A DNA stretch of 64,000 bases from Ruditapes philippinarum (GCF_026571515.1 NW_026858374.1:1-64000), one strand, 5' to 3'; shown: positions 12,716 through 54,235, counted from the first letter of the stretch. Numbers and translations: made by a program. Notes: generated by a model from the letters alone, not told the origin.

Positions 12716-12737
12716 TTAAGCATTGGAAATACTAACT

Positions 12738-24700: not shown

Positions 24701-26733
24701 TTTAACATTGTACACAGTTGAAAAGTAAAGGGTTGTGAATGGGTTTGAAATAAACAATTTTCAGAACTGTGATCAATTGTAGGCATAGTAAAGTAGCTGT
24801 TTTGGGAAGAGTTTGATATTCTAAATTGTGCCATTGGAACAAGCCTAGGCTTTGACATTGTTTGTTGTCAGAAGTATCGATTTTGAGGTCATTAGGTCAA
24901 AAATGACAGTGGAAAAATCCTTGGGTAACAATAACTTGTTATGGCTGTTTTATAACTACATCTTAGGACAGCACATACTTTTATGCTTTAGAGTCTTTGT
25001 TACTAGTATATTACATGTCTCCTAAAACTGAATTGCAGCCTTAAGTCAACACATACACATATTCAAAGTCAATATAAAAATCACAACATTTATTCAGAAC
25101 AACCGGGATACTACATTGAATTTTTAATTTCCATTAGTGTATAGTTAGAAATGGCAAAGGTTATTTCTATATATTAAGATTAATAGCACATTACTGTTTA
25201 TACACGGACGTGCATCATGTCAATATCCTTTGTAAGTAATTCATTGATAATGCAACACAATTTCTTTTTATTAGGGGTGGAGAATGAGAATGAAAATTAA
25301 GTAGCCATGATTTGTTACCGAAAGTATTTGCAGTGTCAACTCGAGACAATGTATTGACTTGATATAATCTAAACTTATGTACTTAAAATTACCTCTTGAT
25401 ATCATAACGAGAATGGTGTTGACTCTGGTACAGGGTCGAAATTAAAACACCCGACATAAGTAATGTAAAGTAACTCAAGCTTGCTTAATTTTAAAGGGAA
25501 GATAAAAGTTGTCTTTCTTGATATATTTCATTTTAAGATACGCCATGGGGTTACTTCACATATGCCATGTCAATCTAGGACCTGAATAGACAGACAAAAC
25601 AATAGTAAGAATACGCAAACCGGATATTAGCGTAGACTACACAAAACAAATAATTAAACAACTGCTTAAAAGTGTTAAACCATTTTTTAAAAAGAATAAA
25701 GATAATTTATTTGTTTTTGATTATTGCTCTTTGGAAACAAAAAAATATGAACGACATTTCGACATGAATAACCACAAATTATACCATAGAAGGTATGCTT
25801 TTCGAATTTTGAAGGTGTTTGAGTGTAAACAAAAGTTATACGCAGAGGGCAATGATGTTTATTAGCCGTGAACAATAGCTGAAGCTTTGCATTGCTGATA
25901 CAACCATGGTTAGCAATCTTGATGACAAGGAAAGTGCATTTTGTCATCGAGGCACACGGGCCTACGGACGTTTTAACTGATATCTATATATATGTATAAC
26001 AAATTCATTTACCAAGGAGTCGGATTTTAAACCTCAGTTCATAGAAAACTTTGATGTTGCGTACTAAGTTACCATGTCCAGTCAAATACTCTTCCGGTAT
26101 GGTGTACTAGCTGATAAAGTCCTGCGAGTATAACTGAATTAGTAAAACAATGAAACAGGCTCAACTCAGGGGTACATTGCCATTCTTTTTGGACATTATC
26201 ACATGGTACACATGTTTCTTATTCAAAAAGTATGAACTATGGAAAAACACAAGCGTCAAAAATAAACTTCAAGATTTTGATAAAAAAAGAAGATATTTAC
26301 GTTTACACTTTTATCAAAATATCTTTAAACAAGGATCACTCTTTAACAATTATTTTTTATATACATATGTATAAATCAAAATTAAGGTCTTACAGCGAGA
26401 GTCAGGTAGTATTACGCTTAGATAATGCACCGTGTATATCCAGTAACACCGGAATGTGAAAATAACGCACGATTCGTGCAAGAAGTAACGCAGAATTGTG
26501 CAATAAATGGCGGATACATGACAGGATTTCCAATGCGGTAAGTAAACTGGCCAATATAATTTTTTTTTAACCGAACTGAAAAAAAGGAATAGCCGCATGC
26601 GGCTGCGAAGACATTATTCTTTATCCATCGTCAAGATTATGTACTTTTCAAGATCATTCGTTAAAATAATGGCTTGAGTACCGTTATAAGCGTGATTCTG
26701 CCTTTTGTCGACTTTTATAAGTACAACAATGCA
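12738..26733. repeat. Tandem array of four ~3.43-kb units (about 12738-16453, 16454-19880, 19881-23305, 23306-26733)
   Basis: Identical ORF-track peptides recur with a ~3425-bp period. The junction gtacaacaatgca|tagatttaatctaaaaagtggg occurs three times; the last copy exits at aacaatgca|aattatacc. Copy 1 is ~290 bp longer. Confidence 0.95.
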
Positions 26734-27109
26734 AATTATACCGTATTATTTCGATTTTTGGTAGGCAAAGGACATTCACTTAAATTCTGGTGACATAGAA
26801 AATTGAAAAAAAGCTGATAACATGTGTTTCAAGCTGTTTCTATTAGGTAACGCAGATGTACGAGAATAGTGCTTCGCGGTAACACCTGAAAATGTGATTT
26901 TGGTACTGAATTGTTACACAGGTTTAACGCCATTAATCAGCCAGTATAAACACTTTTTATTGGTAAATTGTTGAAAACCCTAACCAAAATTTCAAAGCAA
27001 ACAGAATAAAACGGAAGCGGTAGACATAATAATAATAATGGTTAAGGATTTAACCAGTGGATAAGCTATCCATTGGTTAATTTTAACCAATGTTTTAAAC
27101 AACCCGGTC

Positions 27110-27932
27110 CTGTTGTCCGTATTACACCTTTATATGGACAGCTATCCATTGATCCATTGATGTGTAATTCAGTTTTAGTTCTACCTTACCTAACAATGAA
27201 ATATGAAACATATAAAAACCACTCTAGCTTTTACCGAAGCAATTCATCATGTTGTGTAAAAACTACGAGTTTATGCTCATTAAATGACGGGGCCTGTTTA
27301 TTTTCTTTACCAGTCTTGCAGAAAATGTAAAGACACACCTTATATATTTAAACAGCTTATCTTAATCAAATGCAAATGTAAATAAGTAAATATATATCGC
27401 AAAATAAAATGTGCTCTTGGCTACAAGGACAATTTGCACACACGCAAACTATGCCATATTTGATATCAAAATACACAACAATGCGTCACCGTTCAGAACT
27501 GTTCAGTAATTAGGAGAGATGTGTAAGCGGTCGGTAAAGTCGCAGTTCCGAGGGTAGCAGGTTCGAGTCCCGGGCAGACCGCACATTTTTCTCACCCTGT
27601 GACAAATGAAAATAAGATGGGTTTTTTTTTATCAGAATATTTGAAAAAGTCTAGTTACAAGAAAACAAATCAATATCAGTTGTATTTCTATAAACCTCAA
27701 AAAAATCTGATTTATTTATTATCTACAACTTGTTTCTTACGTTTTATGTCATTATCTCTGCCCTGACATTATGTCTGGTGACATATCGAAATATATGTAT
27801 CATTCCCAGTACAAAAACGGCCGTTTGATGTCTGTGTCGGGTTTGAGCATAACCGAAAATGTGATTTTAATCCGCTTCCACATGTGACGTCACACGAAGA
27901 CCAATCAGACCAACGGGCCCAGTTCCAGTCAA
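27110..27932 (-). pseudogene. Pseudogene paralog of the TM-TSP1-gC1q genes (closest to the 39829-41590 copy)
   Basis: TSP1 exon 27741-27932 (192 nt, DWNWARWSDWSSCDVTCGSG...ICHQT*CQGR) has an in-frame TAA. The C1q exon remnant at 27110-27335 (TFSARL...SFNEH...KVELKLN...MDSCPYKG) has a lost acceptor, a frameshift and large deletions. Intron sequence matches 40420-40560. No TM exon recognised. Confidence 0.88.
27500..27604 (+). mobile_element. tRNA-like repeat fragment inside the pseudogene intron
   Basis: B-box-like GGTTCGAGTCCC, ending ...caccctgtgaca; no complete cloverleaf. Confidence 0.4.
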
Positions 27933-28769
27933 CAACTAGTGGAAACTAAAAATGATTTTCAAACTATTTCCATGAACTTCAAAAGTGACTAAAGTATGTC
28001 ACTTGCACAGAGGAGCAGACTGCATCGTTGCCGCGATTTTTAGGAGTAAAACAGGTTCTGTAGTAAGAAAATCGCTTCGCATTTCTTTAATAATGCATAC
28101 ATGTAATACATAGTACATACAAGAGATAGTCCGTGCTAATCTCATTTGATTACTTTATCCCATGATCATTTCACAATTGCTAAAATTTCAAATATTTCTT
28201 AAAACATTCTCAAAAACTGCTGTAGAAAAAATGATTAGATCACTCTCCACGTGTCAATATTTTGAGAATTAATCAAAGTTTAAGACATGCCCTCATGCGT
28301 TAAGATCATCATCCATTATATCTGAAATGTATTTTACTTGACATATTTTATACCGCAAAGTAATAGATATTCATTTCCATTTATGCCCCTTTTTCAAGAT
28401 TTTTTTTTGTTTTACAAGATCGAATTGTTTTAAACTGTTCATAATGACCAAAATATAACGAATATAAATAATTTGAAGTAAAATAAGGTATCGACATGCC
28501 TGATTCCGAGTTATCTTTAGTTGAAAATGACTTAAAAAAGCAAAAATGCTCACTTTCAGGAGCAAATTATTAACAAATGAGCATGGCAACCCAATTATGG
28601 TTTTCTTAACACTTCCTACTGCCATAGCTTAGTTTGTAAAAATATGACACATGTTTGAAGTTGAAACGTATGAACAAAAAATGCCAAAAATATGTTTCTA
28701 CACTGTATATACGTTGCAAATTGAATTAATAATAGTTAACATTTTTAGACAATTTTTTTAAATATGTGT

Positions 28770-28955
28770 CAAACAGAAGGGCCACTAGATTTCAGAAGGA
28801 AATCAGGACCTAGACCTAGACAAAGATGGGTGAAGAGGCAGGTATAGAAAATTCAGCGAACAAGATTCACAGCAACTGCACTACATAGCGCATCATAGAG
28901 GTATAACTGACAAATCTGCAACATGGCCGCCTCAGACTGGGCAGACCAAAGTAAA
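28770..28955 (+). mobile_element. Possible 3' remnant of an RTE-like LINE
   Basis: Translates as DFRRKSGPRPRQRW, resembling the GxRxRGRPRxRW C-terminal motif of RTE ORFs; otherwise degenerate. Confidence 0.35.
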
Positions 28956-28985
28956 GAATATCAAAAATTTAAGCCATGTCAAACC

Positions 28986-29327
28986 TATGGTACGATGGTG
29001 AAAACGCGATGGTACGATGGCTGGCGAAAAAACAATGGCACGATGATGAAAACACGATGGCGCGATGATGCGATGGTACGATGGTGAAAACGCGATGGTA
29101 CGATGGTGAAATAGCGATGGTACATGGTGAAAACGCGATGTGACATCGCGTTTTCATCATCGTGCTATCGCGCCATCGCGATTTCACCATCGTACCATCG
29201 CGTTTTCATCATCATACCATTGTGTTTTGATCATCGTACTATCGTGCCATCGCATTTTCACCATCGTACCATCATGCATCGCGGGTACAGACTTCAAAAT
29301 CACGATTGTCCAAACGGAGCACCGTAA
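28986..29327. mobile_element. Palindromic foldback/MITE remnant built of CGATGGTGAAAACG-type repeats
   Basis: Arms invert about aacgcgatg-tga-catcgcgtt (~29131-29151); right terminus ACGGAGCACCGTA. Confidence 0.8.
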
Positions 29328-31681
29328 TAAAACATTAACTTGCAGCAAACTTAAACCAAATATTTAAATGGACAAGCAGTAAAAGTATTCGGAAGGCAGT
29401 CTAAGACACAAAAATATGGTAAAACTTATTTTTCAACAAAACAAACTGTCTGAGACAGACAAGTTGTATAAACATAGTTTGAATGTAATTTTTGGACAAA
29501 CAATTTACCAAAAATGAATCAATGAAATCCAAAGTCCCGAACACTACTGTTAACAAATGCTTTCAATGTTTACCAAATATATCTCCAAAAGGCACTGAAA
29601 GTTCATCGACCTAAAGTTTTTTTATTTTTAGTGGAAAGTTTGGCTTGCTGCTTAGAAAAGGGTAGCACCGCCAATTCTGAAAGAATGAGGAGTAAACAAT
29701 GTTGGGTCTATGTGAACAGTTTGAAGTTCAATCACACGTTACTGTATTGACTTTTTAAAAAAAGACTACATGTATTTCAATACCAGAAAAACCGGTAAGG
29801 TTATCGAGCATTACATGGTTGCAATGATAACATCAAACAATAACACCATCCGTTTAATACGGAATACCGTTAGGGCCATCGTGGTTATACGTTAAAATAC
29901 TGAGGGCGACAATGCGAGAGTGCGACAGTGCGATGACGACAATGCGACAGTGCGATGACGAGAATGCGACAGTGCGATGGCGAGAGTGCGACAGTGAGAT
30001 GACGAGAGAGCGACAATGCGAGAGTACGATGACGACTACGGAATACCGTTAGGGCCATCGTGGTTACACGTTGAAATACAGAGGGCGACAATGCGAGAGT
30101 GCGACAGTGCGATGACGACAATGCGACAGTGCGATGACAACAATGCGACAGTGCGATGGCGACAGTGTGACAGTGCGATGACGAGAGCGCGACAATGCGA
30201 GAGTGCGATAGTGCGATGGCGAGAGTGCGACAATGCGATGGTGAGAGTGCGACAATGCGGTGGCGAGAGTGCGACAATTCGATGACGAGAGTGCGATAAC
30301 GCGATAGTACGATGACGACAGAGCGATAGTCTTATCGCACTGTCGCCATCGCACTGTCGCATTGTCGTCATCGCATTGTCGCATTGTCGTACTGTCGTCA
30401 TCGCATTGTCGCACTCTCGCCATCGCACTGTCGCACTGTCGTCATCGCGTTATCGCATTGTCGACTCTCGCCTTCTGGTGGACGGTTCTAAACTGCTGGC
30501 GAATAAGCTGACGGTATAGAATATGGGATAATTTTACTTCTGTCAATATTTTTTTTTCTTGCTCTTTCTTTTTCTTTTTATTATTTGTTTTTTTTCTGTA
30601 TACTAATAATGTCTAAATGAAATCTTAAATTAATAATAAGAATCATTTTGTATATAAATACTGAAAGAGTTATACATAGACGGAAAATGTAATAAATTGT
30701 GTGAAACATTAATATACAATGTAATAGAAATATTTCAGATGAAAATGATCTTATGTTGACATTTAAAAGATGAAAAAAATAAATAAAATCATTGTTTATT
30801 ACTTGTATAAAAAAAACAAACGAAATATATTCATAGATCGTCATCAGTGGTTTTATTGTTTTGTAAGATGTATAATTAATTATATAACTAACATTGTAAA
30901 TAATGATACATGTAATTAGAAATTTACGTCAACACATAATTTTTTCTATATATCTAACATAAGTGGTCAACAATTTTCACTTTAAGATTAACTTAACAGC
31001 AGATCCTACTACAATGTATAAGTTTAATTGGTCAGCATATTGTACTATAGCCAACTGACTCCGCTGGTGGACATAGTAAGACAATGTGTTTCAATGTTGA
31101 AAAACACATCTATCCATTATATTTAATCCGGAAAAAATCTTACTGTTTAGTTGTTTTTGTTGTTGTTATTTTTTGTTGTTATTTAAGGGAAACATTCAAA
31201 ATTCGAATTACCAACTACCTGCCGGTAGGTAGTGGAGGATTAAGAATAACCAACTACCAGCTAGTAGGTAGTAGGTTATTTGAATATCCAACTACCAACT
31301 ACCTATCAAATTGACGCTTCTTTAGATTTTTATCAATATCTAAGATCGAGCCATTTTTGTTGCTTGGTGAACATAGCGCTTTTATATTTCTTAGAGATAG
31401 TAAATAAATATGATTAAATAAAAATAAAGAAATATAAAAGATATACTAGATTTCTGTGTCCACTTGTTTTATATATAGCCAAAGTGATTTAGCTCAACCT
31501 TAAGAAACTGCTTATGAACAGAGGAAAATGATGTTTACAGTGAAGTTTTAATTTATTTTGCAATGTTAGTAAAAATTGGTTTATGGTTTATGCCATATTT
31601 TCTTCTTATACTATATGGTCAGCAGACTTAACATACGGTGCTTTAGGTACACATGTATACTAGAATCTGCTGACCAGTTAA

Positions 31682-32083
31682 CCCATTCCCGCATAAGCAT
31701 TCTGTGAAAAATGGCTGTTTTCATTGAAAACCCCCCTGTTACACAAGCTCAAATTGCTATGAAACTATAATGTCGGTGGTTTTACTCAGGTACCCATTTG
31801 TGCCTAAAATAATGCACGAAAGGGCACCTAAGGTCTTCATCCACCGGTAAAGCTGGAACGTCGCCATATGACCTATACTGTGTCGGTGCGACGTAAGACC
31901 CAATCAATCAATCAACTATGAAACTAGAAAAAATGCTTTAATACTGATCAAACTTGGCACAAATGTTTACTAAGCCATATCATTTGTATCTTAATTTCCT
32001 GTTACCAGGACAACTAGGGGACATTTCAAAATCACTATAATGTTGTGTTAATTTTTCCATCAAAGCTGCAAATTCCCGATGGG
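31682..32083. mobile_element. Partial inverted copy of the 3810-4425 piggyBac-like MITE, within the foldback spacer
   Basis: TTAA|CCCATTCCCgcataagcattctgtgaaaaatggctgttttcattgaaaa is the reverse complement of 4378-4429; homology continues to the equivalent of ~4145. Confidence 0.75.
31768..31915 (+). mobile_element. 5'-truncated SINE with 11-bp TSD
   Basis: Flanked by direct repeat CTATGAAACTA (31757-31767, 31916-31926); (ATCA)n tail; a near-identical body lies at 38832-38945. Confidence 0.85.
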
Positions 32084-33867
32084 ATTTTTTTCATCTTTTA
32101 AATGTCAATATAAGATCATTTTCATAATATCATATTTTAATGAAATATTTCTATTACATTGTATCTATCACACAATTTATTACATTTTCCGTCTATGTAT
32201 AACTCTTTCAGTATTTATATACAAAATGATTCTTATTATTAATTTATGATTTCATTTAAACATTATTAGTATACAGAAGAAACAACAAATAAATAATAAA
32301 AAGAAAAAGAAAAAAACAAGAAAAAAATATTGACAAAAGTAAAATTATCTCATATTCTATACCGTCAGCTTATTCGCCAGCAGTTAAGAACCGTCCACCA
32401 GAAGGCGAGAGCCGACAATGCGATAACGCGATGACGACAGTGCAACAGTGCGATGGCGAGAGTGCGACAATGCGATGACGACAGTACGACAATGCGACAG
32501 TGCGATGACGACAATGCGACAGTGCGATGGCGACAGTGCGATAAGACTATCGCTCTGTCGTCATCGTACTATCGCATTATCGCACTCTCGTCATCGCATT
32601 GTCGCACTCTCGCCATCGCATTGTCGCACTCTCGCCATCGCACCCTCGCATTGTCGCACTCTCGTCATCGCACTGTCGCACTCTCGCAATCGCACTCTCG
32701 CATTGTCGCCATCGCACTGTCGCATTGTCGTCATCGCACTGTTGCACTCTCGCATTGTCGCCCTCCGTATTTTAACGTATAACCACGATGGCCCTAACGG
32801 TATTCCGTACTATCTAGCGTATTACCGTTTCAGTTAGGGTCAATATGGCGACATGGGTACAAACATTCTCCTTTTCGGTAACCCAGACCCTTACTAGCCT
32901 CACCGACTATATTACTTTTTTCAGCTGATCAATTTGGCAACATCTATAGCAATTATGTCGAATTCATTTAAGCGAAAAAGTAGTAAAAAAGTTAAAAATA
33001 AAATACCTTAATTTTTTTTTTTTTGGGGGGGGGGGGGGTGCTATTATTGACATACACAATTTTTTAAGCGGGTTGTTGGTGGCGGTTGCGTTGTATTGGT
33101 TGAACTAAAAATCATGTTTGAAATAAAAACAAACAAAAATGACGATTGATTACTAGTATTGCTTTTATTTCAAGCACTTTATAAAATTTCTTGTATTGAA
33201 TAGTTTGTTTAAGCACTTGAATTCAGCAGTTGAATGTAAATCATAAGATAAATGCTATTTGAAAGTCCATTACGTCTGGTAAATAAATGTGGTTAGATAT
33301 GTTGGGGTATAATATTACATAAATTTCACATTAACTGAACCTTTAAATTTCACACACACTTCCTTCTACAATGGCAATGTATTCTGTGGTTATGCAAGCA
33401 AGATGAAAACCATTAAACAGCTTATAATAATTCACCTTTGATAGTGAAACTTGTTTTGATATACATCATAATTATGGCATGAAAACAAACACGCACGTAC
33501 ACATTGTCTAGCGATTTATATACAAGAAATAGCATATTAATATTAGGGCTTTTCATTCAGTTTCATGCATTATTTTTATGTAAATAATGCAGTGAATTGA
33601 CAAATGCAGGCATTTAATGCAATCTTTATCTTAAATGAAAAACAAGTAAAAGTCAGAAATGATAAGTGATGGGGATGTTCTATGTATCCTTAATTCTGTT
33701 ATAAAGACAATGAATATACAAAATGACGTATCTAAGTTATAAGTTAATTTCATTAATTAGTCTGGCAACAAATTATTCTAAAATAAACTCATCTAAATTA
33801 TTTTCAATTAATGAACAAGAGTTGACAGTTTTTATTTGCACACCGTAAAACTAAATGATATCTTATT

Positions 33868-35308
33868 TTAGTTTTTGACGAGTAAAAAGCCTGTAAATGT
33901 AGTTCCATCTGGCTGAATGTGAATTGGCACACTCCCTGAATTTTGGACCCATACTTCACTTCCGGCATGGACAAATACCACAACAGAATCACCGCCTGCA
34001 GTTTTTATTCCACTTTTAAACGGACACTTACTGGTGTCCATTTGAAACTCAGCGGTATTGTTAGAACCACTCGCACCATATTCTCCTCTAAAGCATATTA
34101 TGTCGTCCATGATTGTGTTGTCTATTTGGTTTAATTTAGTGTTTTTGAATGCAAAATAATTGGTACTACCATAGATACGAAGCTTCGTAGTTATACCATA
34201 AAGAGTTGTCGCACTGACAGATTTGTTATTCACTCTAAGTTCTACTTCCCCATATGCGTCGGTAATTTGTATGAAATACATAAAGAGATAGACACCACTC
34301 TCTGGGGCTTTGAATATACCCGATCTATTGTCGTACCCATTCATATTATTGGTGGTAATCTCGTTAAAGACTACACGTTTATATTGTTTGACTGCCCGAG
34401 TCTTATTCGCAAGTCTTGCTGAAAAACTCACATGATGACCTGAAAGGCAAACATATTATTTATACGTATATCAAACAAAGAAAAAAACTATAAGCACACT
34501 TAACAATTCTTTTTTTACTTTGAACAGCAATCGTTTTTGATATTCACGACTATCAAAATAATCATACATTGACTGTATGTTAAGTGTTTTTCTATCTTTT
34601 TGTCACTGACGAAAAATTGCCTTTTATTCTTAAGTCAAGCGAGTATTTCTGTGCGAAAAAGCATCTGCAAATTGAATACTTACGAACTCTATCACTTCTT
34701 AGATCCAGACATTTAGGCAATTGACAGACCGAAATATCAATAAAACTCCCAGCACAAAAAATGCCGCTTGGTGTTGGAGTCGGGTTTGTGCATGTCCGAA
34801 ACCGTGACTGTGAACCATTCCCGCACATGACGTCACATGAAGACCATTCTGACCACGCAGCCCAATTACCATCAACTAAAATATTTAAATTGTATTTTTT
34901 CATTACTGTAAGGTGTTCAACACGTTTTATTAAAAGGGCTTTCTAAAACCCTGCCCACTTTCCTTTGAATGAACGTTGTAACAATATTATCTCAGCAGAG
35001 GTCGTTTTTTTGAAAGTATCTAAAAATATTTCTTTGTTCACCGCAAACAAAATCTGAAGATACTGTAAAGTATACTAACCTTGATTGACAGGAATATTTA
35101 TCGCAAATATGATGATAACGACAACAACTGCGACATATAGTATTATCATCATCACAAGCATAGTGATCAACAAACATTTCATCCGGTTTAGTGTATTATC
35201 GGATTGGCTAATTTTGTCTTTGATGATTTCTGCCTTTATTTCCTTTGTTCCTACCCCTTTCGTATCCAATCTTGTGTTCTCATAGATCACACTTTTGTCA
35301 CTCTGCAT
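33868..35308 (-). CDS. Type II membrane TSP1-gC1q protein, paralog A (330 aa; exons 35308-35080, 34875-34684, 34439-33868)
   Basis: Exon 1: MQSDKSVIYENT plus hydrophobic TM. Exon 2: TSP1 VDGNWAAWSEWSSCDVMCGNGSQSRFRTC. Exon 3: gC1q (VSFSARL, VVFNEI, GYDNRSGIFKAP.SGVYLF, GSEVWV, TTFTGFLL). All introns GT-AG, phase 1; the joined length of 993 nt is in frame. Confidence 0.92.
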
Positions 35309-35430
35309 TTTAACAAATTTACAAACACTATATTTAAATATCAAAACGGTCTAATCTACTTGCTAGACTAAATAAAATCATAGATACATTGGCTCTTATA
35401 CAGGACAAATATTAATTTAGAGTTAAGTTT

Positions 35431-35445
35431 AAAACTTCCGTGTTT
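35431..35445 (-). promoter_or_regulatory. Conserved ETS-like site (CGGAAGT) ~125 nt upstream of the paralog A ATG
   Basis: aaaacttccgtgttt; the same motif occurs at the same offset in paralogs B and C. Confidence 0.5.
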
Positions 35446-36479
35446 AAGATTTTTCACCAAACAAATACTTGTATGATGCACATATGTAAAATGATGTACT
35501 TTTGTAGTTTAATATGTGTATCCATGAGATCAGATCTAAAGAAAAGACTCTAAGAGTAATATAAGTAAATGCAACAAATAAGATGGCGTGCTTGGCTACG
35601 GCTTCAGTTTTTAACTTCAAACATGTTGGTTAATCTTTATTGATTTGTTATGCTGTTTAGATTCATATTTTCAGTATCGCTTTTTGCCCTACTCATTATG
35701 CACAAGCACGAAATGTTACTTCCGATTCTTAGTAAATTATTGTAATTTAAAAACAGTCTCAATGTATAGTGAAAAACTCAATGAGGATTTACGGCAATTC
35801 AAACAATAGACAGAACAAAACATTACGTTCCAGGCCATTAATAAAATAATCAGAGATAAATGTCTTCCAAACCAATTGGTTAAAAGTTTTAAACTATGGC
35901 CATAACTTGATCATGATAGTATGTCCATTCTTATTAATAAACATTGACAATAACATTTACCTCTGATTACGGAGAATAGCATGGGATAACAATTATTTAA
36001 TCTGAAACAAAAGATTATAAACTTCTTTTCTTTTCATTGTCTCACAGTAATTCGTCAAATACAGAACTAGTTAGGACATTCTTCAGCTTTCGATACCATA
36101 TTAGATATCCCCAGCAAACTTTAAGCATTTTTCTAAGATAAATAAGCAATTATCATAGTATAGTATTGCAAGCAGTATAAAAGTGAACTACCGGTTAGAA
36201 CACCAGCAACATTCTGGAGGGCCGTGGCCATTCAATTATGCCATTGTGGAAGACATGAATAAACCTTTAATATTAAATTTCTTAGTTTAACATTTTAATG
36301 TGTTAAATTTCCATGCATTTTAAGGAAATTATGTTTATACATCAGATAATCAAAGTATTCACTCAGGATGAATAAGTCTAACTAATGTTTCAACTTTTCT
36401 CTATTTTATGTAAATTTGTTGGGAAAATTCAAAGTTCTTTAAAAGTTATCTCAGAGAACAGTTTTTAGGGATACCCAGA

Positions 36480-37000
36480 CAAACAAACCTAAACTAAAGA
36501 GGAGATAACTCTTGAAATAAATATGCTAGAATTATGAACATCGTTATACATGATGTGAGTGGTGACAAAGAACAATTATCTTCAGTCTAAAGTAGATACC
36601 ATTTATAGTAACAAAGAAGAAAAGAATTTCTAGAAAAAATCTTAAGTTCAAGGGGGACATAATTCTGGAAATAGTAAAGCTAGAAGTCGCACACATCATT
36701 TGAGTAATAATAAGGAACATATACTTGTCTGAAGCAGATACATTAAGTGACAAAGAGGTTATAGAAAGCAAACAACATTTATTTCATGAAAGTCTAAGTT
36801 CAATGATGATAATTCTGATAATATTGGTGCTAGAATTATGAACCCTGTAACATATGATGTGAGTGATGATAAGAAACACATATTTAAAGTTTGAAGTAGA
36901 TCCACCCAGAAATAAAGAAGTTATTAAAAACATGAAAATTCTAAGTTCATCGTGGTAAATCAATACATTTTGATGCTAGAATTGTGAACCTCGACGTGAA
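36480..37000. repeat. Degenerate ~150-bp satellite remnant
   Basis: atgctagaattatgaac-like motif recurs at ~36522, 36827 and 36973, with a weaker copy near 36680. Confidence 0.5.
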
Positions 37001-38069
37001 TAATTGGTTAATCAGTAGGGGACTAAGAAAAAGTTCAAACACTTAGCTATAGAAAATAAATGACGGAGCACATGTGATTACTAATATTGTAAACGGACCT
37101 GGACTTCTCTCGGGTATTGTGGTTAATTTGGTACACTTTGCGCGTTACGTTGTTGATTTTCTTTTTGTTTCTGGAATAAGTTTAAACATATTTTTACTTT
37201 ATTTACTTTACAAAATAAATGTATCAACAATGTATTACCCTAAAATTCGATAGTAAGACTGTCTCGATAATGTGCCACCAACTGAATTAAAAAACAAAAT
37301 ACATCAATGTCACGAAATTGTAAAGTTTCAATTTGAAAGCTAAAATCAACTAAATCATATACCGGCAAATTAATGATTTTAAGCTGTTTTGCTTATAATA
37401 GACATTAACTTGATCGCTATTGTTATCGTTTTTAACTTGTTTAAATAAAATGCGTTATTACACAACAGCTGTTTGTAGCACAAATAAAAAATCACGGTCC
37501 ATGCCCGAGAAAAAAGTAACCAATGAACGATCACCTGATTGCTATCCCTTTCTCTGTCGACACAACTTCTCTCTTCCCCTCGGTACGTGTATGTCGTTGA
37601 GAAGACACGGGGCATCGACAGAAGATTTGAAGACTGGGGACGGCGAAAAAAGATCGGAACTTATGCTGCGGACCAGCTGCCGATGTGCTGACTAAAGACG
37701 AGGGGAGTGGCCCTACAAAGTAGGCGCTTTGGTCGACGAGGATGGTGTGCTAAGATGCGTGAGCCCTCAGCACGGTTAGACAGCTTGAACGGCAGGCCGT
37801 TTGCTGGCACCAACAGCCCTTTTCAGGGCTACCCTTTCGTATTGTCACAGGTTACTGTATATTAAGGTTCTCATTGACCGCCGTACAGTGACCTACTTTT
37901 GGCTCAAAATTCATATCTTTGGCTAATACTCCGTGGAAATTGCACGGAGGTAAATTATCCCCACTTTGTGCTCCTAAATTAACTCTTTAATGGTATGACT
38001 GGTGACATGTCCGGGGTCTGTACTCGACAGCGAAAGCTGCATTTTGTGCTCGAAAGGGCGGATGAACCT

Positions 38070-38312
38070 NNNNNNNNNNNNNNNNNNNNNNNNNNNNNNN
38101 NNNNNNNNNNNNNNNNNNNNNNNNNNNNNNNNNNNNNNNNNNNNNNNNNNNNNNNNNNNNNNNNNNNNNNNNNNNNNNNNNNNNNNNNNNNNNNNNNNNN
38201 NNNNNNNNNNNNNNNNNNNNNNNNNNNNNNNNNNNNNNNNNNNNNNNNNNNNNNNNNNNNNNNNNNNNNNNNNNNNNNNNNNNNNNNNNNNNNNNNNNNN
38301 NNNNNNNNNNNN
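38070..38312. other. Assembly gap (243 N)
   Basis: Run of N. Confidence 1.
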
Positions 38313-38831
38313 AACCCCAGAAAAAGTGATCTATTCAATGGACATGCTCGGGAGTACGGGTATCTAATACCCGTTAACGCACTGAGCATGCTTAAGTATA
38401 TTACTCTGACACATTTTCAACAGAAAGGTCCCCAAATTATGATACAACCTTATTTATCTTATGTAAGGTGTTGTGATATTGTTTACCATTCGTGACAACC
38501 ACAATGTATGTTATGAATATTATAAAAAAATAAATAAAATTGTGAAAATGACAATCATTTTATGTTGAATGAAATCATTGCTTTTACTTTCCAACTTCCT
38601 TCCATGTTATTCATTTGTGGCAATCATTTATATTTACGAACGTTACCATGTTGAAATTGGGAAGAAAAGCGGTAAACTATCGTTCGTGTGTATGTTTGTC
38701 TCATGTACGAATATCTACTTTTTATTTACTTTCCATAGAAAATGACATTGTTTTGTCAGTTAAAAAAGGACAAATGAAAGAAAACAGTTTAAAAAAGTTA
38801 AAAACGACAAATAACCGACAAACAACCGTTT

Positions 38832-38945
38832 ATGGAAGGGCACCTAAGGTCTTCCTCCACCAGTAAAGCTGGAACGTCGCCATATGACATTTACTGTGTC
38901 GGTGTGACGTAAAACCCAATCAAGTAAATAAACAAACAAAACAAG
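38832..38945 (+). mobile_element. SINE 3' fragment
   Basis: agggcacctaaggtcttcctccaccagtaaagctggaacgtcgccatatgac matches 31820-31900; (AAAC)n tail. Confidence 0.8.
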
Positions 38946-39249
38946 TTTAATGTTATTATTTGCAAGAATGCTCCTAGGCCTGACATTAATGTAACAAGGT
39001 GTCAAAACTGTCACTATCGGTTTATTGTATAAAATAAATTTTAGAGTGGTTTAATGTTGCTTTCTGCACATTTATTTTGTGAAGAATTGAATTCTTAATT
39101 TACAGGTGAATCATGTAGTATTGACAGATTAAACGTTATAACTTACTTTATAGAATTACTTGCAGGTTAAGATACATATTGTTTGTTCATACAAAATGAC
39201 TTAAATAGACCATGGTCATGAAATATATAAACAATGATAAGAATATACA

Positions 39250-39325
39250 CAATTGAGACCACCCCGCAATTAAGACCATTTTGGTCCAGTACCGTTTGTG
39301 GTCTTAATAAAGGGTTTTTACTGTA
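39250..39325. mobile_element. Tc1/pogo-like MITE end fragment (second copy 50873-50946)
   Basis: gaccaccccgcaattaagacc...ggtcttaa...gggtttttACTG|TA is shared by the two copies. Confidence 0.55.
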
Positions 39326-39828
39326 AAAGATTTTTTTCACACAAAAGTACAATTATTTAAGAAATATATTATCACATAAAAAAAGACAGTGAAAAGGTAC
39401 ACATGTATACATTTTAGAAAGTTAAGGGAAGTACTGATCACACTTTCACAATTGATTATCAACAAACATACAAATATTTATCAAAATTTAGGTATTACAG
39501 CCATATTTATGCAGTATTACACTTAGATAATGGGTAAACTGTTGAAAACTAATCACAATTGAAAACAGAGCATTTCAAAACAAAGACAAAAAATGAGTTC
39601 AAGCGTTAGAAATAATTATAAAAATAACATTAACCTTCCATGCTGATATATGAACCAATCTTAAATGTCAGTTCATCAACATTAGACGACGTCGTCACGT
39701 ATTAGATATCTTATCATGCATTTTTATCCAGATTTTCTTAAATCTATATATAACCTATAGGTATTTTGAATAACCGTTTCTATGCTCTTTATATGTTTGA
39801 TTGTTACTTTTTGTTCTGTATTTATTCC

Positions 39829-41590
39829 CTAATCTTCCTTCAGTAAAATACCAGTGAAAGCGCCTGAAGTAAATGAATGAAAGTAACTATATCGCCATCC
39901 CGCATTCTGAATCCAAACTTGACTCCCTGCATGCATATATGTAATAATTGAATCACCACCTTTTGCTCGTACCCCTCCTTTGTATGGACAACTGTCCATA
40001 AATTGTTGTAATCCAACAATGGAAGAACCGGTTAAAAGATGCTTACTTTCTCTTAAGCAACTTATTTTCTCTACGGTTGCATTATCTGGCCTGTTTATGT
40101 TTGTACTTTGGAATACGACAGAATTATTGTTACTAAAGACAGAAATATCTACATACATACTGGAAAGTGTTGTCTTACTGATGGATTTGTTATTCAGTTG
40201 TAGTTCTATCTTACCAAATTCACCGTCAATTTCAATGAAATATATAAACAGATAAACACCACTCACTGGAGCTTTGAAAATGCCTGAACTAATATCGTAC
40301 CCATTCATGTTATTGTACGTAATCTCGTCAAACACGACGGGTTCATGCTCATTAAATGACGGGGGTCTGTATACTTTATTAGTCAGTCTTGCAGAAAAAG
40401 TACTCCTATAACCTGAAAGACACACCTTAAATATTTTAATAGCTTTTCTTAATTCAATTGAAATGAAGACAGGAAGTCAATTTATACTGCAAAATAAAAT
40501 AGCTCTCGGTTACAAGGACATTTTGCATACTTATTTAAGCAAATTATGGCTGTATTTTATATCAAAGTACGCAATGTTCCTTCTATATATTGGCGAAACA
40601 ATGATTTTAAAAGTCCATTTACACGAAACCAGTATCTGGTGTGTCCGCATCGTATATAGATTTACTATGAAGTGTTTCTAAATATTTTTTTCTCCCAAAT
40701 AAACAGATCACATTAACTTCTACAATTTGAATCTTACTTTTCATGTCATTAACCCTGCCATGACATTTTGGCAGCTGACACGTCGCAATATCTGTATCAT
40801 ATCCAGTACAAAAACGTCCGTTTGATGTGGGTGTCGGTTTTGTGCATGTCCGGAAACGTGATTTTGATCCACTTCCGCATGTGACGTCACATGAAGACCA
40901 GTCAGACCACTGGGCCCAGTTCCCGTCAACTGAAAAGTGCGAATAATTTTCAAGCTGCGTCCTTGTACCACAATAGTTATCTTCGATATTATGGCCTAAT
41001 AATCTAAATTCCTCAAAGTCTAACAGAACAATATCAAAGTAAACTATACTTTCGTTGCAATGGATATAGGTGTCACCCCGGTATAGAATAAGGTCCGGTC
41101 CGTTGTAGTATAGAAAATCTTTGATAAGACAGTTAAACCTGATAATAGTAACACATATTTAAAGTTCTTAAAAAGTTGAAGGGTTGACATTATTCACATG
41201 TGTGTTAATTGACTAAATTAGCACTGACGTTTACGTTATCGTAAGCGGATATCTTTGTCAGATATATAGTATCAAAAACTGTAAAATTATTTGGCAGACA
41301 TCTTTAGGCAAACAAAAAATGATGTCATGTGAGTTAGTTTAGAGGTTAATGTACTTACCTTGGTTTATGGGTGCATATATCACAAATGTGGTAATTATAC
41401 CAATAACTGCAGCGTACATTAAAATCATCATCACAAGTGCTGTGTACATTAAACATTTTATCCGAGATAACCTATTGTCAGAAAGGCAATTTTCGTCTTC
41501 TACACTCGCCCTTTTAGCATCAGTTCCTATCCTTACAGTACCGGTATTTAACACAGTGTTTTCGTAGACCACAATCTCCTCGCGTTGCAT
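39829..41590 (-). CDS. Type II membrane TSP1-gC1q protein, paralog B (335 aa; exons 41590-41359, 40929-40738, 40412-39829)
   Basis: MQREEIVVYENT plus TM; TSP1 VDGNWAQWSDWSSCDVTCGSGSKSRFRTC (frame not shown in the ORF track); gC1q STFSARL...GYDISSGIFKAPVSGVYLF...AFTGILL. GT-AG phase-1 introns; 1008 nt in frame. Confidence 0.92.
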
Positions 41591-41711
41591 TATAAACACT
41601 TTGTGAGCAATGGAGAACTAGATTTTAAGTTGACGGTTAGAGTCCAAACTTTACTTGTATCGAATAGAATATTATAATACTAGTATACCGTTTCAAATGA
41701 ATGAAAATCTA

Positions 41712-41725
41712 AAAACTTCCTTGTT
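41712..41725 (-). promoter_or_regulatory. Conserved ETS-like site (AGGAAGT) ~122 nt upstream of the paralog B ATG
   Basis: aaaacttccttgtt in an otherwise diverged upstream region. Confidence 0.5.
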
Positions 41726-44053
41726 AGGTGAATTTACCTACACATGAACAGCAGTTATTAATCGAGTAATGCACACGCATTATAATAGTACAGTTGAATA
41801 GCGATGATTCAATGTTAGGAGTTCAAGTTTTCCACCGTGGCAACGCTTCCTGAAGGCACTGTAGACACGTGCCTACACTTTTTCGCTGAAATGATAGATA
41901 TAATGAATATAAAATGCAATAAGGATAATGGCGTCCAGATATGTAGAAAATGATCAATAGTCATATTCGAAAACAAGTCCGTAATTGAGTTTTATCTTAT
42001 TTTATAACGAAAGCGATGCCTTTTGGATGAAGCATTGACATCTTGTCTGTCATACCATTTTCCCTTGAGGTATTCATAATTTTATTTTTTGTATGTTAGC
42101 TCGTGGGTTCTCTAACGTTGAACAAAACACATAGTAGTGACGAAACCAAACAAGGTCATAAAGTCGATTTCAAATAAACGTGAAACATACTCTGTGTTAA
42201 TACATCTCGGTAACGATTTAAGTATGTATTGTAACTACATTGTATATACACAAGTAAAATCTTCGTATACACAGCAAAATCTTTATTAGCACAGTGGTAA
42301 AGCGTTTGCCTTTTGAACTAGCGATGCGATTCATTCTTTTTTTCTCCCTTTTTTAAAATTACTTCACGCAAAATTGTTCATTCAAACTGAATATATATTT
42401 GAGAGTGAATAGTTCTTCCGGATTCTTTTGTTGACTTTGCGATCAGAATGACGAGCTGTTTTATTTGCGTAGAAACCGTACTTATTGAATTACTGGAGGT
42501 ATGAAATAGAGAAAAACAGAATCCCTTAAGAAAGCCAACACGGCAAAATTGAAAATGTTGCAGGTTGGGTGTGATTAAGTCTGTTCATGGGCGGTAGTGA
42601 TACATGTAATTGCAAGCTGCCTTCAACGACACGTTAGTGCCACATTGAAGTTTACTTTGTCTACTTTACGTTAACAATCAGTTTTATGTATTTTGTTTCA
42701 CCATAAACATTAAATCGAGAATTTCATTTATAAATATTGGGTCATTATATCTTATTGATAAAATACATCAAACGCTGTTTGTGTGACAACAGATATTTTA
42801 TCACAAGTTATTATTTTACTGTGTGTTCCTTTGACTCCTAGGTGTCTTACCGATTGTCCTATGACTATGTATCAAGGTGTTTTGCGACTGCTTTTAGTTA
42901 ATGACCCTCTTTCTTTTTGATCATTGTTTTCATTTTCTTTCTAATTACATTTTTAGACAATCTTAATAATCACTTTAAAAGATATAAGCCTTTTTGTCGC
43001 TATGCGAATGAATTTTGATGTTTACTAAAACTTTTGCATACATTTGTTTTTATTGCATAGTTCTAGATTCATATATCGTTACTCCAACGATATACATGTT
43101 CCGCAAATGGCTCCTTTTTGCAAAAATGTCACTAACAATAGTTTTGCGCTAAGTTAGTTATAAGTAGAAACATATTTATATTGATAGAACATCTTTTAAT
43201 GTTATCAAAATGCTGCAATAATAATGTATTCTCTTCCTGCTGAACATGCCTAAAATACCTCAGAATGCAGCTATGCCAATGTAGAATTTCAAAAAAATCG
43301 GGGAAGCATGCCCTCGGACTCCCCAATTACACTAGTGCCTACACATTGGTTAAATTATTATCTAGATAATTAATGAAAGTTTTAAGAGCAGTGTAAAATG
43401 TTTATTTGGAGGAAGTTTACAGATCACAAGTATCCGAGAAATTTAACTAGAAAGTTTGTTTCTGATACTCCTTTAGATTATTTTAGATAGATGTTAATCA
43501 AGATTCAAGTAATATTTTACATATAATGTGGGATTAATGACAGATTTTTCAGTATTAACGACTAAATTTCTACTGCAGTAAATTTATGCATATTTTGACC
43601 ACTTAATGGTAATTTACGTGGTTTGTAAGTGCCATTGATAACGTGTAAATTGCTTCCTTTTGGTTACTTCACAATATTACACATTCAAATACATTTTCAA
43701 AATTTTCATGAAAAGTAGCATGAATCTGGAGGCGTGCTGCTTTAAGTGCATCATTTCAATCTGCAATTAATAAAGTCAAAACTAAGTCAGACACACATTA
43801 TTAGAAAACATTTATAGTAAAAAATAGTGATAATAATAAAAAATGTAAGAATATAATGATCGTATCTTGTATATATAATACACATGAACCGTACCAAAAT
43901 TGATTTAATAAATAGTTTTGAACATATTTCTAAATATTGACAACTTTGTTTTCCTTTTCCTTCTAAAAGTCAGTGGTATGGAATTAAATATGGTAAGTAA
44001 ATATCGGACATTTTACACTTTTCAGAAATATCATTTATATTATTATACTAATT

Positions 44054-45567
44054 TTAGAGCGGCAAATGAGATGAAATTGTGTCTTGTATCTTTGAACTTT
44101 CGACCAGTAAAACTCCTGTGAATGTAGTACCATCTGGCTGAATGTGGATGGGCAGTCTCCCTGAATTTTGGACCCAGACTTCACTTCCTGCATTGACAAA
44201 TATCACAACAGAATTACCACCTGCCGTTTTTATTTCACTTTCAAAAGGACATGTTTTGATATCTATTTCTATTTTATCAATTTTGTTAAAACCAGCTGCA
44301 CTATAACGTCCTCTGAAACATCTTATTTCGTCCATAACTGAGTTTTCTGTTTGGTTTAAATTTATGTTTTTGAATACAAAAGAATTGTCTCTACCAGTTA
44401 TGTAAATCTCCGTAAATATACCATAAAGAGTTGTCGCACTGACAGATTTGTTATTCATTCTCAGTTCTACTTCCCCATATGCGTCGGTAATTTGTATGAA
44501 ATACATAAAAAGATAAACGCCACTCACTGGGGCTTTGAATATACCCGATCTATTGTCGTATCCACTCATGTAATTAGTCGTAACCTCGTTAAACACTACA
44601 CGTTTATCTTGGTTTACTGCCGGCGCCCTGTTCGAAAGTCTTGTGGAAAAACTTACATGATGTCCTGAAAGATACGCATCAGATATTTATATCGCAAACA
44701 GAAAAAGAAGCAAACTCAAAGTTTTTAGTTCACTTTATGTTATCCGCAAACAAGTAAAGTATTGATATTAATAGTCATGACCTATAAAATTATGACATGT
44801 TTTAAGGTAAAATGTGTTAAGGACAGTCATTGAAATAACGATCCCTTTATTCAGTAGTCAATACATCTTAAAGTTTGAGATAAACATCTCCTCAAAAAGG
44901 CAAAAACAACTTACGAATAATGTCACTGCTGTCAACCAAACATTCAGGCAATTGGCAGGCTGAAATATCTGTAACTTTTCCAGCACAATGAATACCGTTT
45001 GCTGTTGGTGTCGGTTTTGTGCATGTCCGAGACCTGGACTGTGAACCATACCCACACGTGACGTCACAAGAAGACCACTGCAACCAAGCAGACCAGTTCC
45101 CGTCAACTAAAATATTCAAGTTGTATGTTTTACACACACATATATATATTTGTAATATTTGTAAGTAGGTCAAACTCTATTAAATGGCTTTCTACCCCTC
45201 CCCCACACACCTTTCACGTGGTAATTAATATATACGCTGTATGTATATACTTAGTAAAGAATGTAATGAAAATCTTTATACATATTTTTTATCACCAATG
45301 CGAACAAAATAAGCTGAAGTTATTGTAAGTATACTAACCTTGATTGACAGGAATATTTATCGAAAATATGATGATAAAGACAAAAACTGCGACATAAAGT
45401 ATTATCATCATCACAAGCATAGTGATCACCAAATATGTCATCCGATTTAAGACATTATCGGAATGGCTCGTTTTGTCTTTGATGACTTCCATTTTTGTTT
45501 CGTTTGTTCCTATCCCTTTTGTATTTAATCTTGTGTTCTCATACATCACATTTTTGTCACTCTGCAT
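44054..45567 (-). CDS. Type II membrane TSP1-gC1q protein, paralog C (343 aa; exons 45567-45339, 45106-44915, 44664-44054)
   Basis: MQSDKNVMYENT plus TM; TSP1 VDGNWSAWLQWSSCDVTCGYGSQSRSRTC; gC1q VSFSTRL...TTFTGVLL with a ~13-aa C-terminal extension relative to A. GT-AG phase-1 introns; 1032 nt in frame. Confidence 0.92.
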
Positions 45568-53296: not shown

Positions 53297-54235
53297 AGAC
53301 AATGTCATAAATACTGCTGTTATATTGAAGTTTATAGACAATGTCATAAATACTGCTATTATATTGATGTTGAATAGACAATGTCATAGGTATTACTATT
53401 ATATTGAAGTTAGTAGAAAATATCATAAATAGAGGATGTTGAGTGAGTGTTACTTCAGTACTGAATTCATTGCACGAGTTGAATAGAATTATATTATGCG
53501 AGCCTCTGGCAAGCATAATATTATTTTGTTCAACGAGTTCGGTGAATTCAGTAATGAACTTACATGAATTTAATTATCTATTTATTGCATACCCAAAATG
53601 AAGACCGTTTAAAGTGGAAAGTGTCGTTTACGTTGACGCGCCTGTGGTGTAATGCTAACATTTAGCTATGTTTGTATAACGGTAATGACGTCACGTCGAA
53701 ATATATGCACGGCCGTGCGGTGCGGTGCCATTTTTGCAGAGTCGCAAAGTGGGCACGGGTGTGTGATAAATACTGCTATTATATTGTTAGTAGACAATGT
53801 CATAATACTGTTATTATATTGCAGTTAATGGACAATGTCATAGATACTGCTATTTTATTGAAGTTAATGGACAATGTCATAGATTCTGCTATTTTATTGA
53901 AGTTATTAAACAATGTCATAAATACTTCTATTTTATTGAAGTTATTAGACAATGTCATGAATACTGCTGTTATATTGAAGTTAGTTGATAATGTCATAAA
54001 TACTGCTTTTATATTAAAGTTAATAAAGACAGTGCCATGGATGCTTTTATAATGTTGAAGTTAATAGGCAATTTCATAAATACTGCTATTATATTGATGT
54101 AAAAAGACAATGTCATAAATACTGCTATTGTTTTAAAATTAAAAGACAATGTCATAAATACTGCTATTATATTGCCCTAAAAAGACAATGTCATAAATAC
54201 TGCTATTGTAATGAAGTTAATAGAGAATGTCATAA
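53294..54235. repeat. ~39-41-bp minisatellite beginning at the LINE stop, split by an insertion
   Basis: Unit agacaatgtcataaatactgctattatattgaagttaat; ~3.5 copies at 53294-53430 and ~12 at 53765-54235. Confidence 0.9.
53428..53768. mobile_element. Hairpin-containing MITE/Helentron-like insertion inside the minisatellite
   Basis: Imperfect ~120-nt palindrome tactgaattca..cgagttgaatag...atattatgc/gcataatat...ttcaacgagttc..tgaattcagta; the minisatellite resumes in register after it. Confidence 0.7.

Follow-up and report, generated by a model that had tools for sequence, protein, structure and literature searches.

A clam gene cluster predicted to encode type II membrane proteins with one TSP1 repeat and an insertion-bearing gC1q domain

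Related C1q-domain and TNF-type proteins

Research on the C1q-domain (C1qDC) proteins of bivalves has treated them almost exclusively as soluble, lectin-like opsonins. Over 1200-1500 C1qDC genes have been counted in Ruditapes philippinarum, and a minor class of membrane-bound members has been mentioned for bivalves (PMC6835236, PMC8905726). The genes described here lie on contig C6861 of this clam, in a window (the whole stretch of DNA analysed) of 64,000 nt. With the described bivalve classes sghC1q and sC1q-like type II (PMC6835236, PMC8905726) they share a single-exon C-terminal gC1q domain, tandem duplicates and surface-loop variation, but they differ in a predicted type II anchor, a conserved tail, a TSP1 stalk and a Cys-bracketed insertion of ~60 aa. 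Compared with the secreted classes (sghC1q, sC1q-like type I and II), their hydrophobic segment is internal and long rather than an N-terminal signal peptide. Neither a collagen match in Pfam nor a helical stalk beyond the membrane anchor in the AF2 models was found.

A secreted molluscan TSP1xN-C1q family (P0160-P0162) also has TSP1 followed by a C-terminal C1q domain, on phase-1 module exons with a split Val codon before D-G-x-W. Its members appear in RefSeq as 'thrombospondin-2-like' (Dreissena polymorpha), 'ADAMTS adt-2-like' (R. philippinarum) and 'hemicentin-1-like', occupy at least 7 loci in this genome and form a 69-member Atlas cluster; they are 30-34% identical to gene C of the window over 36-47% of its length. 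In these proteins a signal peptide and a Cys-rich N-terminal region precede 2-3 TSP1 repeats and an uninterrupted C1q domain matching profile positions 1-127, whereas the window genes have one TSP1 repeat and a C1q domain split by an insertion. Our literature search found no paper characterising the TM-TSP1-gC1q architecture. The TSP1 and C1q combination as such is not unique to these genes, and "undescribed" in an earlier note on this DNA must be read alongside existing RefSeq models of the genes as uncharacterized proteins.

Ligands of the TNF superfamily such as ectodysplasin-A combine a type II anchor, a stalk and a trimeric jelly-roll head. The window proteins resemble them in a predicted N-in type II orientation, a C-terminal head of the C1q/TNF superfold and a short tail that could signal in reverse; in contrast, their head scores as C1q, their stalk is TSP1 instead of collagen, and a conserved furin site is absent. 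To our knowledge, type II topology has so far been known for the sister TNF fold and not for C1q. Membership of the TNF ligand superfamily was rejected because Pfam gave no match to the TNF homology domain (PF00229), even at E up to 1, and the head is C1q.

Gene organisation, transcripts and shared modules

Six-frame translation and splice-site inspection of the window revealed three intact three-exon genes (A, B and C) and one decayed copy, all on the minus strand (Table 1). All introns of the intact genes are GT-AG and phase 1, and the coding sequences measure 993 nt (A), 1008 nt (B) and 1032 nt (C). The RefSeq models XP_060599399 (330 aa), LOC132753006 (335 aa) and XP_060599401 (343 aa), all named "uncharacterized protein", agree with the predicted lengths and with the residues at both exon junctions. 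The plan proposed earlier, with three intact genes and one pseudogene, one exon per module, phase-1 joins and a TSP1 exon of 192 nt in each of A, B and C, is thus borne out by the six-frame reading, splice sites, Pfam and RefSeq models. In the pseudogene, the TSP1 reading with the stop and the lost Cys covers 27742-27930, the C1q remnants themselves span 27108-27328, and no exon 1 was found by blastn or tblastn with gene B. The assembly gap lies 2.7 kb upstream of the gene A ATG and 1.5 kb downstream of the gene B stop; no family exon was found by homology search between 35308 and 39829, no reading frame spans the gap, and the scaffold join matters only for the adjacency of genes A and B. The neighbouring exons belong to a Cys-loop channel and to a bromodomain-like repeat, neither of them an immune gene, a setting that speaks against the immune-receptor role discussed below.

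Table 1. Coordinates of the cluster features, counted from the first nucleotide of the window
Feature	Position	Strand	Basis
Pseudogene (beta type, B/E-like), whole	about 27108-27933	-	tblastn/blastn against gene B
Pseudogene, remnants of intron 2 and C1q exon: frameshifts, stops, large internal deletion	27108..27478	-	blastn, tblastn vs gene B; three-frame reading
Pseudogene, TSP1 exon: in-frame stop, one Cys lost	27739..27933	-	tblastn, 70% identity to gene B exon 2
Gene A (LOC132753005), whole	33868-35308	-	six-frame reading, splice sites
Gene A exon 3: gC1q with insertion, stop	33868..34439	-	Pfam C1q E 1e-15
Gene A exon 2: 192-nt TSP1 cassette	34684..34875	-	Pfam TSP_1 E 5e-13
Gene A exon 1: tail and predicted signal-anchor	35080..35308	-	matches P0006
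Assembly gap, 243 N, in A-B intergenic spacer	38070..38312	.	outside every gene model
Gene B (LOC132753006), whole	39829-41590	-	six-frame reading, splice sites
Gene B exon 3: gC1q with insertion, stop	39829..40412	-	Pfam C1q E 1e-13; AF2 model
Gene B exon 2: 192-nt TSP1 cassette	40738..40929	-	Pfam TSP_1 E 7e-14
Gene B exon 1: tail and predicted signal-anchor	41359..41590	-	matches P0158
Gene C (LOC132753007), whole	44054-45567	-	six-frame reading, splice sites
Gene C exon 3: gC1q, ~60-aa insertion, 13-aa C-terminal extension, stop	44054..44664	-	Pfam C1q E 7e-16 (two stretches); AF2, Foldseek
Gene C exon 2: 192-nt phase 1-1 TSP1 cassette	44915..45106	-	Pfam TSP_1 E 4e-14; six Cys, WxxWxxW, CxxTCxxG kept
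Gene C exon 1: ATG, 42-aa predicted cytoplasmic tail with V-x-Y-E-N-T, signal-anchor; phase 1 end	45339..45567	-	identical to P0001 residues 1-76

Only two genes, D and E, are present on a second contig that probably represents the other haplotype. The cluster looks like a duplicated two-gene alpha-beta unit (C-B, then A-pseudogene), with a single unit, D-E, in the other assembled copy; positional counterparts between the two copies are deeply diverged, and gene number differs. The family comprises just 5 intact genes on two contigs; this small size, without the expansion usual in recognition families of bivalves, also counts against the receptor function. Since the family is lineage-restricted as well, the earlier term "system" was too strong.

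The genes are real, expressed and spliced as predicted. While the genomic copies span 1.4-1.8 kb with stop-filled introns, two short public cDNA-type contigs lack such breaks and read uninterrupted over exons 1-2-3, encoding P0002 (278 aa on a 1052-nt contig) and P0157 (322 aa on a 1287-nt contig). P0002 is 92-97% identical to gene A in all three exons, and exon 3 of P0157 is near-identical to that of gene B; one transcript is a mosaic. The genes are under purifying selection; every dN/dS value is below 1, a further point against the receptor function.

Examined exon by exon, the TSP1 modules match TSP_1 (PF00090) at 49.6-53 bits against a threshold of 21.6 (E 5e-13 to 4e-14). Residues C13, C17, C28, C40, C50 and C55 and W4, W7 and W10 are invariant in the five genes, and C-x-x-(S/T)-C-x-x-G is present; AF2 models this repeat poorly (pLDDT about 42), owing to a shallow alignment in the region. 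For exon 3 of A, B and C the match to C1q (PF00386) reaches 51.8-59 bits against a cut-off of 23.7 (E 1e-13 to 7e-16), and the RefSeq proteins score 49.6-57.1 bits, with the match split by the insertion. The gC1q core is modelled at pLDDT 95-98 with the strand order A, A', B', B, C, D, E / F, G, H, and Foldseek aligns it at E 1e-10 to the gC1q domains of Caprin-2, C1QL, CTRP5 and collagen VIII with target-normalised TM-scores of 0.82-0.87, the alignments taking up about 190 columns for targets of about 131 residues. The C1q signature of PROSITE reads F-x5-[ND]-x4-[FYWL]-x6-F-x5-G-x-Y-x-F-x4-[CV]; the five genes match it through G-x-Y-x-F and then have Q/E instead of C/V. Together with PDB profile hits, these data uphold the proposed identity of both domains.

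The extra length of the head, about 58 residues in the PDB profile matches to adiponectin and C1q, corresponds to the ~60-aa insertion between two bracketing cysteines. Its modelled confidence is low to moderate (pLDDT 52-77 in gene C, 47-59 in gene B), and in close alpha pairs its rate of evolution is about three times that of the core (dN/dS 0.46-0.67 vs 0.18-0.24). In an exhaustive profile search of 1.84 billion representative proteins, only 6 clusters spanned the insertion, all other matches falling in two stretches, and proteins with it form a monophyletic clade in the tree (support 96/92). As judged from these comparisons, the insertion marks a tiny, lineage-restricted clade.

One member of this clade, P0010 (296 aa, from a public run assembly), shares with the clam genes the YENT tail, the single anchor and the Cys-bracketed gC1q insertion. 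Unlike them it has no TSP1 repeat, its anchor part joining gC1q directly. Its identity to the clam genes is 33-39%, and no closer copy of it was found in the R. philippinarum genome. P0010 thus indicates that TSP1 is a phase 1-1 cassette that can be present or absent. The secreted clam TSP1xN-C1q family also contains a phase 1-1 TSP1 cassette that begins at the same split Val codon, and this, the uniform phase 1 of the introns and the TSP1-less homologue bear out the exon shuffling suggested earlier. Either an ancestral tail-anchor-gC1q gene would have gained the TSP1 exon as a cassette, or the lineage of P0010 would have lost it.

Predicted topology and candidate functions

Exon 1 has no Pfam domain. 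Its product starts with 39-45 hydrophilic residues and continues with a hydrophobic segment of 26-30 uncharged residues, with 3-4 K/R in the 15 residues before this segment and 0-1 after it, and AF2 predicts a helix at 36-71 (pLDDT 88-96, around 90). Two tail motifs are invariant, V-x-Y-E-N-T-x-L and S-D-N-x-L-x-R; Y-E-N-T is unchanged in the five genes and recurs in P0157 and P0010. These features fit the type II topology put forward earlier, and the genes are predicted to encode type II membrane-anchored proteins with the N terminus inside. Y-x-N is the Grb2-type SH2 docking motif when its tyrosine is phosphorylated. The motif comprises only three residues, and its conservation points to constraint, not to SH2 binding.

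The explanation that we favour, and hold with roughly even confidence, is that the locus would represent a small lineage-restricted subfamily of bivalve C1q-domain type II proteins serving as trimeric surface recognition receptors with an apex insertion and tyrosine-tail signalling. A gC1q trimer would be kept near the membrane by the TSP1 repeat. The insertion, assigned to the E-F loop by strand counting rather than geometry, would sit at the membrane-distal apex as a variable ligand-contact surface, and ligand binding would be reported inwards through phosphorylation of the YxN tyrosine. The ligands would most plausibly be microbial or altered-self, as for other bivalve C1qDC proteins; the immune-receptor role is one that we only infer. 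An extended form of this proposal, which we consider unlikely, is an individually variable recognition of pathogens or self/non-self, in which the apex insertion would be hypervariable, and diverged haplotypes with gene-number differences and exon mosaicism would provide a germline-polymorphic receptor of a kind undescribed for the C1q fold.

Tentatively, the proteins may instead be cell-cell recognition or adhesion molecules of neural, developmental or gamete type without an immune role, the variable insertion binding to an endogenous partner on a different cell. In vertebrates, gC1q proteins of the C1QL and cerebellin types organise synapses, and C1QL heads bind the TSR-bearing receptor BAI3, which makes TSP1 and gC1q known partners. 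In structure, the gC1q core comes nearest to heads of the Caprin-2, C1QL and cerebellin types, the small family under purifying selection is unlike the expanded secreted C1qDC arrays, and a conserved cytoplasmic tyrosine motif would suit any juxtacrine signalling. However, the likeness to C1QL is no better than that to complement C1q or adiponectin, and copy-number variation, diverged counterparts and a mosaic transcript are more usual for genes facing outside diversity.

Less probable still is a TNF- or ectodysplasin-like membrane pro-ligand, whose ectodomain would be cut off to act as a soluble trimeric cytokine or opsonin. The predicted topology and the jelly-roll trimer fold class are those of TNF-family ligands, and gene A has R-S-D-R in its TSP1-gC1q linker; yet R-x-x-R is missing in genes C, B, D and E, and comparison of the family genes found no conserved dibasic or furin-type site. 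The anchor lies only about 7 residues before the first Trp of TSP1, a distance that is short for a sheddase, conserved cytoplasmic motifs would be needless in a tail that merely anchors, and Pfam assigns C1q, not TNF. The sheddable form suggested earlier is accordingly not favoured. We regard as highly improbable a long cleaved signal peptide, or a misattached exon 1, on an ordinary secreted C1qDC protein with one TSP1 repeat, given that the long hydrophobic run follows the hydrophilic stretch, that invariant motifs under purifying selection (tail dN/dS 0.22-0.58) are not expected of a signal-peptide n-region, that the predicted junction between exons 1 and 2 is present in two independent cDNA-type contigs, and that TSP1-less P0010 has the same tail motif and anchor.

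The existence of one tail-anchor-gC1q scaffold in two forms, one bearing a phase 1-1 TSP1 exon and one lacking it, offers a clean case of cassette evolution. The divergence in copy number and sequence between the assembled copies may reflect variation among individuals and agrees with mounting evidence that immune genes of bivalves show presence/absence variation. If the favoured receptor model is true, a membrane-anchored C1q protein with a conserved tyrosine motif would couple the C1q recognition fold directly to cell signalling.

Gene cluster, gene models and transcript support

Contig C6861 is 72129 nt long in the 1.41-Gb assembly of Ruditapes philippinarum (Manila clam), and its positions 1-64000 are covered by the window. 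Six-frame reading and splice-site inspection identified three intact genes here, A, B and C, together with a pseudogene whose exon 1 is not detectable in the window. All six introns of the intact genes are GT-AG and in phase 1, exon 2 measures 192 nt in each gene, and the coding lengths summed over exons equal 330 (A), 335 (B) and 343 (C) codons. Pfam scans performed exon by exon found a TSP_1 repeat in exon 2 (E from 5e-13 to 4e-14), a C1q domain in exon 3 (E from 1e-13 to 7e-16) and no domain in exon 1. The three genes, the pseudogene and their modular phase-1 exon plan, as proposed in the earlier note, were therefore borne out in every particular. Full-length analyses were conducted on the database proteins P0001, P0006, P0158 and P0159, and all others exon by exon.

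The intact genes are present in RefSeq as "uncharacterized protein" models, LOC132753005 (P0006, gene A), LOC132753006 (P0158, gene B) and LOC132753007 (P0001, gene C), which agree with the predicted lengths and with the predicted residues at both exon junctions. Two proteins encoded by contigs of public run assemblies, P0002 (278 aa from 1052 nt; 92-97% identity to gene A) and P0157 (322 aa from 1287 nt; most similar to gene B in exon 3), read uninterrupted from the anchor via TSP1 to gC1q. Since the genomic genes span 1.4-1.8 kb and their introns are full of stops, these contigs can only be spliced transcripts. They support, independently of RefSeq, the exon joining that had been predicted.

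An assembly gap of 243 N separates genes A and B. As no family exon was found by tblastn in the interval between them and no frame crosses the gap, interruption of a gene was ruled out, and the placement of A next to B is all that depends on the scaffold join. The interval between the pseudogene and gene A holds a long inverted repeat with arms of up to 450 nt, 84-93% complementary and 1.5-2.6 kb apart, with 44-52-nt minisatellite units making up part of them. This foldback-like element accounts for many spurious ORFs in the interval. Elsewhere in the window, satellite-like tandem arrays were noted.

Features of the window, of the second contig C1422 and of the secreted TSP1-C1q loci
Feature	Location	Strand	Remark
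Gene A	35308-35080, 34875-34684, 34439-33868	-	three exons
Gene B	41590-41359, 40929-40738, 40412-39829	-	three exons
Gene C	45567-45339, 45106-44915, 44664-44054	-	three exons
Pseudogene	about 27108-27933	-	fourth copy; in-frame stop in TSP1 exon; C1q exon frameshifted, partly deleted
Assembly gap	38070-38312		non-coding, between gene A start codon (35308) and gene B stop (39829)
Inverted repeat	29855-30709 / 32163-32812		
Cys-loop channel exons	48022-49546	-	two ORF-sized exons
3.4-kb unit array	11794-26197		four copies, ending near 14165, 17981, 21406 and 24832
Bromodomain-like ORF	11825-12220	+	edge of 3.4-kb array
Satellite-like arrays	55521-56512; 53762-54235; 4474-4989		145/292-nt units x3-7; 39-nt x12; 22-nt x23
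Gene D	C1422:6367-8841		intact family member
Gene E	C1422:11084-16071		intact family member
Secreted TSP1-C1q loci	C13416:25897-28862; also C9315, C14812, C2439, C9484, C215, C10724		

Predicted membrane anchor and gC1q head

Exon 1 encodes 39-45 hydrophilic residues followed by 26-30 uncharged residues. Three to four K/R occur in the 15 residues preceding the hydrophobic run and none or one after it, and the run itself was modelled by AF2 as a single long helix (pLDDT 88-96). Purifying selection acts on the tail (dN/dS 0.22-0.58), and its motifs V-x-Y-E-N-T-x-L and S-D-N-x-L-x-R are invariant even in paralogues just 45-47% identical over exon 1. Based on the tail length, K/R placement, modelled helix, purifying selection and invariant motifs, this segment is predicted to be an uncleaved type II signal-anchor, which fits far better than a signal peptide.

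The head was modelled as a confident gC1q jelly-roll (AF2 pLDDT 95-98), with Foldseek matches to Caprin-2, C1QL, CTRP5, collagen VIII/X NC1, adiponectin and C1q heads at E of about 1e-10 and TM-scores, normalised to the target, of 0.82-0.87. The structural alignment spans about 190 columns where the targets have about 131 residues, and the Pfam and PDB profile matches to the head are each split in two. These extra columns and split matches reveal that about 60 residues are inserted, at roughly positions 222-286 of P0001; by strand order the insertion falls past strand E and ahead of strand F, and it is flanked by two invariant cysteines. Given the up-down alternation of the jelly-roll, the inserted loop would be located at the membrane-distal apex. 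Its fold is uncertain, with pLDDT of 52-77 in gene C and 47-59 in gene B, where a second AF2 model brought no improvement; modelling of the TSP1 part was poor in the C and B runs alike.

Proteins with the insertion form a monophyletic clade (96/92) composed of an alpha group (A, C, P0003 and gene D of the second contig) and a beta group (B, P0157 and gene E of that contig). Between close alpha paralogues, the insertion is 49-66% identical compared to 83-86% for the core, and dN/dS equals 0.46-0.67 and 0.18-0.24, respectively. Positive selection overall was rejected, as every dN/dS was below 1. A conserved furin site was likewise rejected on sequence comparison of the family genes.

Distribution, probable second haplotype and a separate secreted family

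When 1.84 billion representative proteins were searched exhaustively with a HMMER profile, 2694 C1q proteins fell within the limit of E 1e-3, but only six clusters matched in a single stretch across the insertion. Three of them correspond to versions of gene A, gene B or near relatives in the alpha group, and the others are P0009, P0010 and P0011. Within the R. philippinarum genome, the inserted gC1q was found only in A, B, C, the pseudogene and the two genes on C1422. The most informative clade member is P0010, a 296-aa homologue with a Y-E-N-T tail, a single anchor and an inserted gC1q, from which TSP1 is absent. This architecture identifies tail-anchor-gC1q as the family scaffold and TSP1 as a phase 1-1 cassette found in some members and missing from others. 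Queried with P0010, word-based protein searches matched only the query, and no usable match came from the ESM Atlas feature search.

Over its first 33 kb, C1422 runs colinear with window positions 57-46943 in inverted orientation. The non-coding DNA on the flanks shows 89-96% identity, and the contigs overlap end to end; C1422 most likely represents the other haplotype. It has just two intact family genes, D (alpha, at the position of C) and E (beta, at the position of B; RefSeq LOC132728473), and gene D was absent among the RefSeq proteins returned by searches. The arrangement in the window haplotype resembles a duplication of an alpha-beta unit, with C-B followed by A-pseudogene. The positional counterparts C-D and B-E (dS 0.18-0.35, protein identity about 72-80%) are far more diverged than their flanks. 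P0157 is a mosaic relative to gene B, being 97% identical in exon 3, 83% in exon 2 and only 68% in exon 1, with a TSP1-gC1q linker five residues shorter, which points to exon-level mosaicism or to an unsampled paralogue from another individual. Old allelic lineages, gene conversion or unsampled paralogues are possible sources of the counterpart divergence and the mosaic.

A unit of about 3.4 kb occurs in four tandem copies in the window and, at about 91% identity, in a single copy on C1422 (20768-23256), a further copy-number difference between the assembled versions of the locus. An ORF at the edge of this array scores as a bromodomain (E 2e-16). At 2.5 kb upstream of gene C lie two exons from a Cys-loop ligand-gated ion channel, recognised by Neur_chan_LBD (E 2e-28) and Neur_chan_memb (E 2e-18); tblastn detected no counterpart of them in C1422:1-40000.

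The combination of TSP1 and C1q is not unique to the window architecture. A separate, secreted molluscan family is composed of a signal peptide, a Cys-rich region without a Pfam domain, two to three TSP1 repeats and a plain C1q. Its members include P0162 of R. philippinarum, P0161 of Dreissena polymorpha and P0160 from another source; it has at least seven loci in the R. philippinarum genome and corresponds to a 69-member molluscan ESM Atlas cluster. RefSeq names P0162 'ADAMTS adt-2-like' and the D. polymorpha relatives 'thrombospondin-2-like'. P0162 has two of the TSP1 repeats alongside the Cys-rich region and the plain C1q, each module being encoded by a single phase-1 exon. The TSP1 and C1q exons of this family are likewise phase-1 cassettes, and the TSP1 exon begins at the split Val codon seen in the window genes. 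No other C1q protein among the best 150 C1q matches has TSP1.

The papers searched mention membrane-bound C1qDC proteins only as a minor class (PMC6835236; PMC8905726), and the available part of the Mercenaria genome paper supplement yielded no TSP1-C1q entry. Literature searches (LOC identifiers; C1qDC with thrombospondin; type II transmembrane C1qDC) found no described account of this architecture. The earlier note proposed the family as a candidate undescribed system; the family's genes, however, are already in RefSeq, and TSP1 with C1q is known from the secreted family.

Overall reading of the family

We are highly confident that the genes form an expressed family of type II anchored gC1q proteins with one TSP1 repeat each and a variable loop inserted in the head. 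With slightly less than even confidence, the proteins may be surface recognition receptors that signal via the YxN tyrosine, a role for which the main rival is non-immune cell-cell recognition. Shedding as a TNF-like ligand is less probable, given the short juxtamembrane stalk and the lack of any conserved cleavage site. The family holds up as real but is narrower in scope than the earlier note held: a C1qDC variant, already modelled in RefSeq, with a tiny distribution.
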